A DNA stretch of 63,995 nucleotides, counting the filler, from Lenisia limosa (Eukaryota > Protista > Breviatea): NCBI GenBank assembly GCA_001655205.1. It is 12 parts of 12 records of this genome, joined end to end, with 100 filler letters (N's around TTAATTAATTAA, not from the genome) between each part and the next. Parts side by side here need not be neighbours in the genome. Positions count along the whole stretch, not along the records: positions 54,072 to 58,902 come from LPNZ01007766.1; 11 more parts are not named here. One strand, given 5' to 3'. Made by a program: the position numbers and the translations under genes. The number at the start of each line of letters is the position of its first letter. The first letter of the stretch is position 1. Positions 53,901 through 59,790 of this stretch are shown here, piece after piece. Below the pieces are notes generated by a model. That model was not told where the DNA came from and did not search any database. It saw only the letters and a list, made by a program, of their open reading frames with translations.

Positions 53901-54099
53901 ACCTTCTGATTAATTAATATTTTCAAAATTTGCTTCTTTTTATTTACTTAAACCTCTTTGTTGTCCTTCTGNNNNNNNNNNNNNNNNNNNNNNNNNNNNN
54001 NNNNNNNNNNNNNNNTTAATTAATTAANNNNNNNNNNNNNNNNNNNNNNNNNNNNNNNNNNNNNNNNNNNNCCCTCCCCCACATTCATCGGTTACTATC

Positions 54100-57013
54100 C
54101 CCTCACATTCATCTTCTCAGTTCTCTTGTTCAGCGTATTGATAGCCTTGCTGTCATTGCCTGGAGAATGGTTAGGTTGGTTCATGGTGTCCCTATGTACT
54201 AATTTATTCGTAGATTATATCGAATGAATGTATCCGTTCCAGACAAATAATGGAATTAATGGACTAATCATCAAGATATATCGACATTTGCCAATATTTT
54301 TCGGACCAGAGTGAAACCCTCCTTGTGACCAAAAAAGAAAAGTTGTTTTGGTCCTGAGTTTCTAGGCAACTACTGGGTCACAAAACCCGTGAAAAATTCG
54401 TAAACTGATCAACCGTCCTCCCCAATTCCCTACGGATATACTGGCCCATAATGCCTCCCTTCTGCTCCTTCTTTGTTAAGCGGCTGGAGTAGTAGTCTTT
54501 CGCATCAGTTTGGATCGTACCAACCTGGGGGAGTAAAAGAAACAAAAAAAAAGTGCCCACAATCCACTCTGTTGGCTAGGGGGAGTAAAACGAAGGAATT
54601 TTCGATGAAGAATATTGAAAAAAAATGGAAATTTATTCTCTCTCTTTTGCCTATTGATTCAAAAACAGTATTTTACCCCCAACAGAGCTGATTTGGGGTT
54701 TTTTTTATTCATAAATTTTCCAATTTTACCCCCCCTCCCACATTAATTACATTCTACCCTCCACCCCAAAGACCTATCATTAATTATTTAAATTTTCCAA
54801 TTTTACTCCCCCCTCAGACAGAGAAGTATTTGCCGATATTTTGGCCTCCACGTTTGACGAAGCGCTTCTGATCCAAATAGCGACTGAAAGGATGATTATC
54901 ATAGTATATGATCTAGTAGTAGGAATTCAAACGGTCCCAAAAATGACTGAATTTCTCGATAAATCCTCGAGTAATATCGATATGTCACCGGTCTTTTTCG
55001 GACCGTAGCGAATCCCTAATCATGCATGTGTGGAAAATGATGGTTCACGTGTAAAACGACAAATGACCCAAAAGTGACATTATGTTAATGGAGGGGGGGG
55101 GGGGNNNNNNNNNNNNNNNNNNNNNNNNNNNNNNNNNNNNNNNNNNNNNNNNNNNNNNNNNNNNNNNNNNNNNNNNNNNNNNNNNNNNNNNNNNNNNNNN
55201 NNNNNNNNNNNNNNNNNNNNNNNNNNNNNNNNNNNNNNNNNNNNNNNNNNNNNNNNNNNNNNNNNNNNNNNNNNNNNNNNNNNNNNGCCCAAAATCTTGA
55301 ATATGGAGGGGGGGGATAATACTTTTATTGGTCAATTGGGGTGAAGGAGGAATAATGAGCGTAAGTAAAGACAACGGGGAAACTTTGAAACAGCAAACAG
55401 GGGCAAGCTTTAGTATAGGCAACTTCCAGTTACGGGAAGCTTGTTAGATAATGTTAAGAGTTCCCGTGGTACCTCATCTCAATTGCCTTGAGGTCTCTTT
55501 CCATTTCTGACGTCATTTCGGGGGCCGTCATCTTGAACCTGGGGGGGGGGGGNNNNNNNNNNNNNNNNNNNNNNNNNNNNNNNNNNNNNNNNNNNNNNNN
55601 NNNNNNNNNNNNNNNNNNNNNNNNNNNNNNNNNNNNNNNNNNNNNNNAAACCCCCCAAAAAATCAAGTTCTTTTCTCCACAACAACAACATGATTCAATT
55701 AAGAACTCTGTTGGCTTAAAAAAGGGAAATATTTGCGAGAAATGGTGAAAATAGAGAAAGGTTGATTGACCCATGCCCCTCCCACTCCCAGGTTCCAAAT
55801 TAATGTCCTTATCCCCCCATCTCCACCCCAGGTTATGTCCTCGATCTTACCATCTGTTATCCAGTCGATCAACTGTGTCCTAAAATAATTAAGTAAAGAT
55901 GAGAAATAAAAATAAGGTTGTATCTGGACGAAGCCGTCCACATCATCACGCTAATAAGAGATATTGGATTATACAATATTAATTCACCCAATCATTTGAC
56001 TTACAATTCTATGCACACAGCTTCCTGCGTGCCTCCCCAGCATATGAAAAAGAAAAAACCGAATAAAACAATAATCAAAGAGAATAAAACAAACTAATCA
56101 TAATCTCCCCNNNNNNNNNNNNNNNNNNNNNNNNNNNNNNNNNNNNNNNNNNNNNNNNNNNNNNNNNNNNNNNNNNNNNNNNNNNNNNNNNNNNNNNNNN
56201 NNNNNCAACAAGCTCTGGAAGATTCAATTCCATATCCCTAAAGTGTAAGTAGTTGTAATCCATCTCCCAAAACATATAAGTGGTAGGGCTTCTTTGGTGA
56301 CAAAAAAAGAGGTGTCTTTTTGGACCTGAGTAAGGCCCTAGTAAGTATTTATCAATTTCATATCCATAAACATTAATCAATCCCTTATCCATAGTTATCA
56401 TGAGATTCTAAAAAAACCTAACTTTTGATATTCACAACAAGGCCGAAACAGCAGAATAAGCATATCGATATTATATGTATATCACGAGGGTTTACAACGG
56501 TCCAAAAAAGAATGGTTACAATATCCATGTTTATCAGGGCTTCATTTTGATCCGAAAAAGAACAGTAAAATATCGAAGACGCAAAAAAGCTGGGAGAAGC
56601 ACATGCAAGCATACAAAGACAGACAGAAAAGAGACTGAACAGTATCAAAACCAAAAGAAATCCAAGATCAAACACAACAGGAACTGAAAGTTAAGCCCCG
56701 CGAAGCATGCAAAAACCATGCGTACTTTTTGTAATTCTCGCTCTGCTGGAGAACAGGACCTGATTTCTTCTCGAGATATTCATCCCGTTGTTGATTTCTG
56801 GAGATCGTGTGAGCATGAAGATAGCGTTGGTGAATCCGTGTTTCAAGTTCCAATTATGGCTATTAAACCTGATTCCAGCCAAGCAAACTTGATGCGCTTC
56901 ATGGTTGAATCAAACTTATCGTCAAGAGACGACAATAATGCCGCCACGTCTTTTGCCTCACTCTTATGCTTCTCTTCGCTGATTTCACCAGCAAAGGACT
57001 GGTGAAAGGACAT
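54100..57013 (-). CDS. FCF2: FCF2/DNTTIP2-like pre-rRNA processing protein
   Basis: Spliced DNRW|FKMTAPEMTSEMERDLKAIEMR|RYLDQKRFVKRGGQNIGKYFS|VGTIQTDAKDYYSSRLTKKEQK is the Fcf2 domain (WF.M...T.E...DL..l..R...DpKRFyK; YFqvGT; fyssRLtKKe). ATG at 57013 (MSFHQSFAGE). Confidence 0.88.
54525..54819 (-). mobile_element. Type example of a putative Introner-like element occupying a whole FCF2 intron
   Basis: The intron begins GT-CTGAGGGGGGAGTAAAATTGGAAAATTT and ends CCTTCGTTTTACTCCCCTAG..TTTTACTCCCCCAG, so its ends are inverted repeats. The internal pair CTCTGTTGG/CCAACAGAG is also inverted. Homologous ends occur at splice sites of at least 7 other genes. Confidence 0.6.
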
Positions 57014-57669
57014 ATTGAAGGTTTAGTTTGTTGGTAAATGAAAAGAAATTCAGCCAGATGAATGAAAAGAGAAACAGGACTGCTATTAATTTAACGTTCC
57101 TAAATAGTACTAAATTTACGTCAAGAAAGAGGGAAACCCGTCTCCAAAAACAAAACAAAGCAGTCCTATTTACGAATTTAGTCTCTTTGGCTGGTTTAGT
57201 TGCTCCCTACTTTGAAACAATACGTTAATATCTTTCCTAAATTATAATATTAATGTAATTTAAATTGCTGTAATCATGATATCTCCTTTTACTATTCTCC
57301 CCCCAGAGAATGTTCGGGAATGATTTGGCTCGGAAGACTTTTGTTCTGGATTGATTGAGATTGTTCCTTTTAAATAGGATCAAAATGGAACTTACCTTCA
57401 AATATTTCAAGACTAATCTACATTTTTCTACAAGTAACCAGACTTCACTAGGCTATTCGTTAGTTTTATCACTATGGGTGACATTGAAGACATAGCTCTC
57501 CCCGTTGAGCGCGGAAGTGGATGCGCTGAGACTGAAATTGCTAAGAAGACATATTCCCTTGCTACTGCTCCCGACCCAAGGTCTGTGTTTGAATGTCAGT
57601 CACTTTTGAAAGCCTCCGTCACTTTTCTCCTGCTTTGGTAATTTAATCTTTGACCCTTTTCTTATTATA

Positions 57670-58828
57670 GGCGAAAATACGCGATTTCACCCTCCTCAGA
57701 TGGAACCGCGTTACCGAGAAGGTCCAACTTTCAGAAAACATTGTCGAGCTCAAAATATTCCTCCCCGTCATTGCTGCTAGCTGCCTTGCCGGTCAGTTTG
57801 TTATTGTTCGTGTCCGTGAAGGAGCCGAGCGTATCCCCTTGACCATCGCCGACTACAAGTAAGCTCCAATCTCCTCCAAACCTTTTTTTTTTACATTCCT
57901 TTGCCGTCTTCTTTTGCTTATTTTCCTTCAGTCGTGAGGAAGGATGGTTTACCATGGTCATTCAGAAGATTGGCCGTTCATCAGAGCTTATTTGCGGTGT
58001 CAAGGTTGGTTGGGTTTCCCCTTTTTTCTTCGGATATTAAACTTCTTCAAGCATATCGACCTGTCTCACACGCATGTCATCATAACATCATTGCTCCTAT
58101 TGTAATACGTTTGTGATCTTGCTTAGCAAGGCGAGGCTTTCCTTGATATTGCTGGTCCGCTCGGAGACTGCAGTGAAATCGAACTCTTCACCACCCCCGC
58201 ATCAGAGAAGGCTGGCCGTAAGGGTAAGCTGATTGTCATCTTTTGATTTTTTTTGTTTTGTTTCATCATCAGATGATGGGTGGTAATATTGTATCCTTTG
58301 ATGATGATTAGAGCTACTTCCTCTCGACATATCTTGAAATATCGACTATGTTCATAATCTTTTCGGACCGCTTGAAAGTACCACAAGTTAATAAATGATG
58401 AGCTTTTGGTAACAATATTCAGCTGTCGTGATTTGCGTCTCCGGCGGCGTCGGTGTCGCCCCTGTCCACCCCATCCAGGTTTGCGCACGTGCTTGCCCTT
58501 CTTTTCCATTTCCTTATATGTGCACTTGCTTGTGACATGATACTCATTGTTATCATATGTTTTTGTTCCAATAATTTCCATCGTTTTACCGCAAAAACAA
58601 GGCTAACCGCAGTGTTTTGGGTTCTTTGTTTTTCATATTTCCCTCGACAGAGTTGATTGAATTATTTCATGCAATTTTCCATAACAGAGTTGTTTCTTAT
58701 TGTGTCATACATTTTTCAATCTTCACCCCCCCCCCCTCAGCGTGCCCTCCATGAAGCCGGCAACCACGTCGTCTCTATCTGCGGTGCCCGTAACAAGGAA
58801 CTCGTGTTCTGGGAAGACAAAATGAAGG
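57670..58828 (+). CDS. NfnA/SudB-like FAD/NAD-binding subunit (ferredoxin-NADP+ reductase / PyrK superfamily), intron-containing, 3'-truncated; N-terminus unresolved (possible ATG at ~57386 or ~57475)
   Basis: Exons 57670-57858, 57932-58004, 58127-58217, 58423-58478 and 58741-58828 splice in consistent phase to NRVTEKVQLSENIVELKIFLPVIAASCLAGQFVIVRVREGAERIPLTIADYNREEGWFTMVIQKIGRSSELICGVKQGEAFLDIAGPLG..VICVSGGVGVAPVHPIQRALHEAGNHVVSICGARNKELVFWEDKMK. Confidence 0.9.
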
Positions 58829-59790
58829 GTGAGCAGCAGTTGCGTAGATTAGATATGAAGAACTCTTCTTCTTGTTTCTTGGTTTCTCTCATTGTTGGCT
58901 AGNNNNNNNNNNNNNNNNNNNNNNNNNNNNNNNNNNNNNNNNNNNNTTAATTAATTAANNNNNNNNNNNNNNNNNNNNNNNNNNNNNNNNNNNNNNNNNN
59001 NNCATATCATGACAAATATATCTAACTGATAAACATTTTGCAACTTTTTGGGTTGTTCCTATATTCAAAATCCCTTAAAAACCTCACAGCCTGACACTCA
59101 AATCTATGCCCTATAACATACTATCTTTGAAAACATAGTGTAGTATTCAATAAACAAAATCCCAAACATTTGCCAACATAGCATACTGCTAACATATTTT
59201 GCACCAAACTTCAAATGGAGACGTTAAAGCCAAACACACCAACCTGCACTGAAGGTATCATCGCTTCTGAGCTCTAGAGCAAAACAATGAACCAATAGCA
59301 GACACAGAAGCGTCAGGAGCCTCGTATTCACCATGATTGATGGCGAATGGAAGATGGGGAAAAGGGATCGCTAACAACAACTCAAATCTCAGCAGTGGTC
59401 CAAGATGATGATATAACTCTCTTTTCTGAAAACAAAGCGCAAGAAGGGGCGAAAAAAGGCCAAATTTTGACTAAAACAGTAAACTGGGTATCAACTGGGT
59501 GACTCTCTTGCCTTTTTCAGCGAAATTTCCCACCCCCTTCTTCCTCTCTCCATCTTAATTCAAAGAGAAAACCAAGGATATCATAGAGAGGCAGGGAAAA
59601 ACGTGAGAAAAAAGCTTCACTCCAGAGATCCACTCCCCTCACTTCCTAACCCCTCTCGGCAGACCCCTGGCAGTCAGCCTTCTTTGAATATAACACGGAT
59701 AGATCTCTTTAAAAGCCGGGTAAGTAGGATGAATTAGGTTATCATACTGACCTACTGACCTCGTCAAAGTTTGAGTTTTGCGTGGTGATA

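Follow-up and report, generated by a model that had tools for sequence, protein, structure and literature searches.

Introduction

It has long been asked by what route intron-rich genomes obtain their introns, and introners, found in ~5% of surveyed genomes, constitute the best-supported answer so far. The gene FCF2 of Lenisia limosa (assembly GCA_001655205.1) raises this question anew: one of its introns, here named F6, is bounded by inverted repeats and ends in a repeat module whose last letters are those of the acceptor, and it can be asked whether an element bringing its own splice site created this intron and others like it. FCF2 lies on LPNZ01007766.1, a piece of 4,831 bases with ~41% G+C and three N gaps, which occupies positions 54072-58902 of the window (i.e., the whole stretch of 63,995 nucleotides that was analysed, to which all positions refer).

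In this work, we combined the sequence of this piece with polyA RNA contigs (run X2, from a library labelled metatranscriptomic), DNA contigs of the same study (run X1), and contig L004 (ENA analysis record ERZ3820729; 2,958 nt), which reaches 160 nt beyond position 58902. The module family was examined in the 4.8-kb piece and L004, covering two genes, namely FCF2 and a NfnA-like gene. In the piece, which stems from a very intron-dense microbial eukaryote, a single repeat module makes up the acceptors of RNA-validated introns. On balance, the evidence leans toward an introner-like family of the miniature inverted-repeat transposable element (MITE) or foldback type, acting as a portable 3' splice-site cassette, as the source of introns of the F6 type.

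Results

Intron F6 is spliced between inverted repeats

Intron F6 (54525..54819, minus strand; 295 nt; GT..AG; phase 0) lies between the codons for KYFS and VGTI. An 896-nt polyA RNA contig (X2) links 54818/54820 straight to 54522/54524 (joint 54522->54818), the two ambiguous letters being the GT found on both sides, and the limits of 54525 and 54819 proposed in the first-pass annotation, together with a YFS|VGT split flanked by GT on each side, are exactly those of this joint. The upstream exon (54820..54883, minus strand) and the downstream exon (54434..54524, minus strand; VGTIQTDAKDYYSSRLTKKEQKGGIMGQYI), both taken from the RNA contig, read ...RYLDQKRFVKRGGQNIGKYFS|VGTIQTDAKDYYSSRLTKKEQK once joined, and the resulting protein, ...GKYFS|VGTIQTD..., matches the Fcf2 profile as a single stretch across the junction. 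A profile search with the spliced exons of this minus-strand gene recovered the Fcf2 domain (Pfam PF08698) with an E-value of 4.5e-11.

On the transcript strand, the ends of F6 are the inverted repeats GT-CTGAGGGGGGAGTAAAA ... TTTTACTCCCCCAG, within the longer reading GT-CTGAGGGGGGAGTAAAATTGGAAAATTT ... TTTTTTTTTGTTTCTTTTACTCCCCCAG, and the element termini can be written as CTGAGGGG.../CTAGGGGG.... Terminal inverted repeats, such as those of DNA transposons and MITEs, are therefore present in F6, as had been claimed: CTG(A)GGGGGGAGTAAAA stands against CTGGGGGAGTAAAAG, the reverse complement of the 3' end, with 14-15 of 15-17 nt pairing and one indel. Further inward, a second pair of inverted arms (54545-54575 and 54679-54709) is 74% complementary. 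The core motif TTTTACYCCCC occurs five times in the piece, always within F6, against an expectation of 0.29 and a count of five reached by none of 100 shuffles.

The interior of F6 consists of modules of three types. The type-A module (55-65 nt) has the form CCAACAGAG-Gn-Tn-TTTCATAAATTTTCCAATTTTAC-Cn-(TC)AG, with CTAG-CCAACAGAG-YTGAT-Gn-Tn-GTTTCATAAATTTTCCAATTTTAC-Cn-(TC)AG as the consensus of the family alignment. Along the transcript strand, the donor GT of F6 is succeeded by the type-A core c' in inverted orientation (54817-54780), then by a G-rich type-C module (54764-54733) and the inverted full type-A module b' (54735-54679) plus one more inverted stub; after a centre of 54 nt come the type-B module g and, last, the type-A module f. 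Module f (54525..54575, minus strand; CCAACAGAG...TTTTTTTTTGTTTCTTTTACTCCCCCAG) is a deletion variant of type A, and its AG is the acceptor of F6. The adjoining module g (54576..54617, minus strand; CAATATTCTTCATCGAAAATTCCTTCGTTTTACTCCCCCTAG) ends in TTTTACTCCCCCTAG and is internal, its TAG remaining unused; type-B copies elsewhere are high-copy and continue as GCGTAAAGG before they diverge (loose ends at 54617). Splicing at the TAG of 54576, which is in frame, would add 17 codons (PTEWIVGTFFLFLLLPQ) free of stops; the RNA contig shows the 54525 acceptor only.

The full type-A module b (54679..54735, plus strand) is internal and antisense to FCF2, and is followed by the equally internal type-C module (54733..54764, plus strand; CCCTCCCACATTAATTACATTCTACCCTCCAC), which reads GTGGAGGGTAG...GTGGGAGGG on the transcript strand and by eye resembles 54072-54106 and 55775-55835. 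Core c (54780..54817, plus strand; TAAATTTTCCAATTTTACTCCCCCCTCAG) is 96% identical to 54712-54735; read in reverse complement, it comes immediately after the donor GT (54819-54818), and the loose ends of contigs at 54789 indicate many copies. Apart from the first GT and the 54-nt centre, F6 is thus made of modules only, arranged as inverted arms in the manner of a foldback element or MITE. Between the upstream exon and the end of the inverted module stands nothing but GT, and the last module borders directly on the next exon, so that an older splice site would find no space.

One module forms four acceptors in two genes

The end of the type-A module coincides with the exact AG at 4 of the 13 known acceptors, namely F4 and F6 in FCF2 and G5 and G6 in the NfnA-like gene, and every sense copy whose core is intact (four in all) serves as an acceptor. 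By our own estimate, based on ~3,200 intronic bases and 13 acceptors, the chance of a copy falling on an acceptor is ~0.004 each, so that random placement of the sense copies is negligible. The claim that homologous modules form acceptors in unrelated genes is hence borne out by FCF2 and the NfnA-like gene, and similarity reaching the exon-intron boundary was found at the 3' boundary of four introns in these two genes.

In F4, the acceptor (55539..55552, minus strand; RNA joint 55536->55849) reads C12-AG behind an N gap (55552 to 55648), which a DNA contig fills with only 26 nt to give a type-A module, TTTTTGTTTCATAAAAAGTTCCATTTTCAC-C12-AG. Intron G5 (58479..58740, plus strand; 262 nt; RNA joint 58475->58738) lies inside a conserved block between Q and R (GGVGVAPVHPIQ|RALHEAGN) that displays no indel relative to bacterial homologues, and its acceptor region (58643..58740, plus strand) contains type-A modules in tandem (d2 and d, ~1.7 copies), with CTTCAC-C11-TCAG as their end. 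The last ~50 nt of G5 are homologous to the FCF2 modules, with a local score of 40, where the best of 200 dinucleotide shuffles scored 37, and z ~9 against mononucleotide shuffles. The acceptor at 58740 is therefore a confirmed RNA joint and a family member, as had been proposed, although it lacks the TTTTAC ascribed to it. Intron G6 begins at 58829 (58829..58902, plus strand; GTGAGCAG...) and runs past the end of the piece. Its end was found in L004:97-160 (minus strand of L004), in DNA contig sequence outside the RNA contig, as a full type-A module, CAACACAGTTGAATTTGGGCTTTTTTTGCGTTATAAATTGTCCAATTTAC-C13-AG, followed by an exon, ACCTEYIQCTDDGSYGRKGWVTQALDD, that in a frame read by hand matches homologues by eye (...TDDGSYGRK...VT...).

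Pairwise comparisons support a common origin of these modules: module b and the G6 module share 81% identity over 64 nt (E 2.6e-10), the G6 and G5 modules 75% over 49 nt, and shuffle tests gave z values of 9.4 for b-f, 9.3 for b-d and ~9 for b-c. Since the similarity spans 50-64 nt upstream of the AG, the type-A module does not reduce to a generic C-rich pyrimidine tract. The BLAST alignment of G5 and G6 extends five letters beyond the AG into the exons, with 4/5 matching, which we read as coincidence. A collinear same-sense similarity between F6 and G5, including a putative type-B copy in G5, was not significant, scoring 25 where the null gave 21.8. Within the module, TTYAC is conserved 9-16 nt upstream of the AG and fits a yUnAy branch site; with TTYAC as its putative branch point, the type-A module would constitute a complete 3' splice-site cassette.

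Donors, G/C runs and predicted folding

Similarity among introns at the 5' boundary was not found in the two genes: only F6 has a module there, which is the inverted 3' module, and its donor is the only one in the sequence examined where an inverted type-A end comes right after GT. The proposal that reverse complements of the acceptor modules sit at donors thus holds for F6 and is otherwise thinly supported here, and splicing of the module in either orientation depends on this one donor.

G-rich modules of other kinds occur at further donors. In the last visible FCF2 intron (54072..54106, minus strand; GTGAGGGGATAGTAACCGATGAATGTGGGGGAGGG), a type-C module begins at the GT of donor 54106 (GTGAGGGGATAG...GTGGGGGAGGG), the RNA contig leaves the stretch at 54107, and the piece ends in a G/C run. 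Donor 54433 is G-rich (GTAGGGAATTGGGGAGG), the donor hidden in a gap at ~56109 reads GT followed by G14 according to L004, and donor 55850 has a type-C-like stretch 15-20 nt into the intron. Among the four donors with G-rich modules, three are without the usual exonic AG (TCT|, TCC|, AAT|) and the fourth has AAG|; of the other donors, 6/10 end in AG or GG. Of the runs of at least four G, 9/10 fall within the 5' half of the respective intron, and C runs are unbiased (6:5). Minor (U12-type) introns were considered and rejected, the donors being GTCTGA, GTAGGG, GTGAGG, GTAAGA and similar, with none resembling [GA]TATCCTT.

It had also been suggested that the G/C termini could fold the donor onto the acceptor or form G-quadruplexes. 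The predicted minimum-free-energy structure of F6 does pair the 5' G run and AGUAAAA with the 3' UUUUACU and C run in an 11-bp terminal helix; however, the whole intron folds no better than its dinucleotide shuffles (z -1.39; 15/200 fold as well), and the six aligned modules yielded no consensus structure, so neither folding nor G-quadruplexes are endorsed here beyond this trivial helix.

Copy number, other repeats and assembly gaps

A total of 1,784 X1 DNA contigs matched the piece, most of them 95-99% alike. Summed DNA depth, which is not an exact copy number, reached 28,500 at 54558-54719 and 8,200 at 54720-54881 against ~34 for single-copy sequence, i.e., 200-1000x above single-copy on parts of F6. 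Many copies in the genome are indicated by this summed contig depth, a measure that does not carry their genomic locations.

Additional sources gave few further copies. A bait search with the module translation yielded no candidate; of two pattern scans of metagenome DNA, one gave 0 matches and the other 3 chance matches with unrelated flanks; and exact-protein look-ups for five other open reading frames of the piece gave no matches, only L004 being recovered. The longer shared module listed in the first-pass annotation is absent from 54072-58902, and a one-mismatch variant of its last 23 letters continues type-B copies at a loose end of the RNA contig (54617). Scans with Rfam and for tRNAs and tandem repeats gave nothing relevant, leaving a short interspersed nuclear element or tRNA origin unsupported. 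By eye only, one degenerate module-like copy was observed at 57283..57308 (plus strand; TTTTACTATTCTCCCCCCAG), which is intergenic and outside both RNA contigs.

Two further repeats were observed. A second, unrelated family with the core TTTTCGGACC / GGTCCAAAAA occurs in both orientations in introns F7, F5, F2 and probably G4 (54226-54320, 54923-55017, 56297-56331, 56488-56576 and ~58324-58380), and reaches a summed depth of 20,800 in bin 54882-55043 against ~34 for single-copy sequence. A third high-copy stretch (55854-56177), inside intron F3, shows summed depths of 37,100 and 7,000; DNA contigs elsewhere join it to type-A C-run ends, and therefore the families co-occur in composite repeats.

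Every N gap adjoins a G/C homopolymer of at least 12 (C14 in L004), at 55093-55104, 55541-55552 and 56106-56109. True gap sizes were 26 nt and 56 nt instead of 95 N, and one gap conceals 44 nt of FCF2 exon 3 together with its donor. Beyond the C14 run (56060-56109, compared with L004:2858-2958), the window and the X1 contig read AATCATAATCT-C..., whereas L004 reads AAAAAAAATAT-C14; the assemblies join different repeats across this homopolymer, and the interior of intron F3 is therefore uncertain.

Gene layout

Two divergently oriented genes occupy the piece, and polyA RNA contigs support each of them. The FCF2 exons (minus strand) are 57115-56889, 56797-56726, 56237-56206 plus the 44 nt within the gap, 55879-55851, 55538-55473, 54883-54820, 54524-54434 and 54159-54107, followed by the donor at 54106. 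The second gene, which encodes a NfnA-like protein binding flavin adenine dinucleotide and nicotinamide adenine dinucleotide (sulfide/dihydroorotate dehydrogenase-like; 57474-58828 plus L004:1-96), has exons (plus strand) at 57417-57580 (ATG at 57474), 57700-57858, 57932-58004, 58127-58223, 58423-58478 and 58741-58828. Six introns of FCF2 and five of the NfnA-like gene, including F6, F4 and G5, were confirmed by RNA, all 11 with GT..AG borders. Exons are very short (29-160 nt), which makes the genome extremely intron-dense: the FCF2 mRNA is interrupted by at least 8 introns within <900 nt, and the NfnA-like gene by at least 6. Monocercomonoides, which has 1.9 introns per gene and an intron GC of 25-28% (PMC8767320), looks an unlikely match. 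Between the RNA contig ends of both genes lie only ~300 nt (57116-57416), probably a promoter region common to the two, in which the degenerate module copy (57287-57306) is located.

The 120 best-scoring homologues of the NfnA-like gene are all bacterial or from metagenome assemblies, with 41-54% identity. Since this gene nevertheless contains at least six spliceosomal introns, a lateral acquisition followed by later intron gain is suggested. The protein also displays an 11-residue insertion relative to bacterial proteins, directly before intron G4.

Discussion

Proposed origin of F6-type introns

The origin that we favour for F6 would proceed as follows. The sense strand of the module carries in its last ~20 nt a branch-point-like TTYAC, a C-homopolymer pyrimidine tract and AG, and the opposite strand of this end, CTGAGGGGGG..., would become a donor region when placed beside GT. 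An element, or nested elements, would have inserted in the FCF2 coding sequence ...TTCTCT^GTTGGT..., and the spliceosome would then remove F6 by means of the target-derived GT and the element's own AG, restoring the reading frame exactly. The insertion would accordingly be the creator of these introns, and the element presumably a DNA transposon. Junctions are seamless within conserved protein blocks in F6 (by the Fcf2 profile), in G5 (by bacterial homologues) and, by eye, in G6, and G5 and G6 probably represent precise intron gains, as the best-scoring homologues of their gene are bacterial or metagenomic. The non-consensus exon flanks at three of the four donors with G-rich modules (TCT|, TCC|, AAT|) likewise speak for insertion. 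As regards the intron-generating, inverted-repeat-bounded family that had been proposed, the inverted termini, the splicing of F6, the high copy number and the probable gains in the NfnA-like gene agree with it, whereas no consistent target-site duplication and, in the 4.8-kb piece and L004, no autonomous or transposase partner were seen.

Several observations weigh against this origin. The letters shared by the two ends of each intron, GT in F6, G|GT in F4, CAG in G5 and G in G6, do not form a target-site duplication of fixed length, and ordinary splice-site consensus or microhomology would give the same 1-3 nt. The terminal 33 nt of F6, in module f, fall in a bin of single-copy depth. Contigs matching the modules diverge ~50 nt away (loose-end agreement of ~0.55 at 54617, 54708 and 54789), and therefore the conserved units are short and joined to varied neighbours; modules recombining in many orders look more like mosaic repeats than like one discrete element. 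Anchoring to splice sites, another claim of the first-pass annotation, applies to all intact sense copies, but modules also occur in the middle of an intron, with 3 of the 5 core motifs of F6 internal, and the intergenic degenerate copy at 57283-57308, which aligned poorly with the family, stands apart from any splice site. The 5' parts of G5 and G6 do not resemble the modules and, at 95% likeness, are single-copy, so that only the 3' ends are demonstrably repeat-derived. The non-module acceptors of the piece likewise have TTCAC/CTTAC, pyrimidines and AG, and selection could therefore have shaped the final ~20 nt. Finally, a word-indexed protein search found no FCF2 orthologues with which intron positions could be compared, and the sample consists of two genes only.

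Other origins

Some of these observations would be expected if older introns had been colonised by an abundant interspersed repeat, with selection keeping the copies at boundaries, or with the repeat targeting pyrimidine-tract/AG sites and its homopolymers expanding later. The unrelated high-copy repeats that also fill FCF2 introns (bins 54882-55043 and 55854-56177) agree with such colonisation, as do the internal and intergenic module copies, the unique 5' parts of G5 and G6 and the signals shared with ordinary acceptors (TTCAC/CTTAC, a pyrimidine run and AG). Nonetheless, after insertion into an existing intron the former pyrimidine tract and AG would still stand between the copy and the exon, and nothing is left of them at any of the four acceptors; in F6 the exon is separated from the inverted module by GT alone; and the introns of a gene whose best homologues are bacterial or metagenomic cannot be ancient eukaryotic ones. 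We therefore regard colonisation as doubtful, while deserving consideration. Repair of double-strand breaks, in which abundant repeat DNA was captured as filler and the captures with usable splice signals persisted, would need no transposition and would account for the 1-3 nt of end microhomology without a fixed target-site duplication, as well as for the mosaic content, i.e., a unique 5' part joined to a 3' module in G5 and G6 and the patchwork of F6; short direct repeats have reportedly been seen at newly gained introns of Daphnia. Against it, neither the identical register of one module end at four acceptors nor the 15-17 nt terminal inverted repeat of F6 would result from random capture, and we consider it improbable. 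About as doubtful as colonisation is a variant in which the unit of spread is the 50-65 nt splice-site cassette itself, delimited by unstable G, T and C homopolymers, instead of a classical transposon. Copies of such a cassette would enter coding DNA and leave no target-site duplication, for example by template switching or break repair at homopolymers, and the cassette would give an intron in either orientation, one strand providing the branch point, C tract and AG and the other a G-run donor context; it would amount to module-level mass intron gain without target-site duplication, in a lineage without described introners.

Intron 3' ends might also have spread through RNA, with an excised intron being reverse-spliced and reverse-transcribed, or through gene conversion from one intron to another, which fits the sense orientation of the four acceptor modules, all ending at AG. 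Against this, F6 contains antisense copies of the module, one of them at the donor; the intergenic space has a degenerate copy; the introns show no relatedness at their 5' ends; and hundreds of DNA copies are joined to varied neighbours, all of which renders this route very improbable. The assembly itself, which breaks at every long G/C run, differs from the other assembly after the C14 run at 56109 and is tiled across F6 by several short contigs, could in principle have set collapsed or chimeric repeats between two exons. However, a single-copy 494-nt DNA contig spans the exon through modules f and g (54115-54608), L004 holds G5 and G6 contiguous with their exons, and the RNA joints equal the predicted GT..AG ends exactly; an artefact is thus extremely unlikely.

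Significance and comparison with known intron-generating elements

Should the pattern seen at these acceptors extend to the whole genome, introners would be known from one more lineage and in an unusual form, in which a module between homopolymers carries a complete 3' splice site, and the shattering of the assemblies at the G/C runs of intron ends would be explained. For annotation, the consequence is the loss of exons in N gaps, as with FCF2 exon 3.

Introners are recognised by similarity that reaches the exon-intron boundary and ends there, compared 3' to 3' and 5' to 5' (PMC12130899; PMC9860276). Those of Aureococcus anophagefferens, Symbiodinium and Polarella glacialis are likewise non-autonomous, have inverted termini and are spliced out (10.1101/2020.10.14.339549; PMC11282704; PMC9860276), and as here one splice site comes from the element end and the other from the target; the scheme of a target GT and an element AG has been described for them, with some classes spliced in either orientation (10.1101/2020.10.14.339549; PMC11282704). 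Their families display a fixed target-site duplication of 3, 4, 5 or 8 nt and whole-intron similarity, whereas in our sequence 1-3 nt are shared, only the 50-65 nt 3' module is common to the introns, the make-up is mosaic and the termini are long G/C homopolymers. The IE1 elements of Micromonas pusilla are similarly short, MITE-like and bounded by terminal inverted repeats, occur in very many introns and supply one splice site (PMC11282704). In Micromonas, however, the element supplies the 5' GT/GC and a 3-nt duplication the AG, while here the putative branch point, pyrimidine tract and AG come from the element; moreover, the Micromonas copies are near full-length and uniform, unlike the mosaic modules of F6. 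Inverted-repeat bounds and multiple copies also characterise the MITE-derived introns of Fritillaria borealis and the invasive elements of Amoebophrya, both of transposon origin (PMC11282704; PMC7789003), but most introns of that sort have non-canonical borders (AG-AC and others) and require altered spliceosomes, in contrast to the 11/11 GT..AG introns confirmed here.

The U12-type proposal for Physarum resembles our case in an intron-dense genome that breaks at homopolymers and in an element carrying splice signals. It differs in its rtatctt...aagATAT ends, TA duplication and use of the minor spliceosome, and no intron here has a [GA]TATCYTT donor. Beyond this proposal, we found no literature pairing introners with slime moulds. 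Complementary ends are known from teleost introns with (AC)n/(GT)n. In the non-conventional introns of euglenids, as in F6, such ends could bring donor and acceptor together (PMC11282704). Compared with the euglenid and teleost introns, the borders here are canonical, and complementary ends occur in one intron only, whose fold is no better than those of shuffles. To our knowledge, fungal introner-like elements are without inverted termini and occur in a single orientation only. They are alike in being multi-copy spliceosomal introns in unrelated genes, theirs with a predicted stable structure, and differ in being similar over their whole length rather than in a 3' module (PMC3609843). Considering all these systems, the F6-type introns most likely represent a new family of an already known kind of introner, whose unusual feature is its homopolymer-bounded, modular design.

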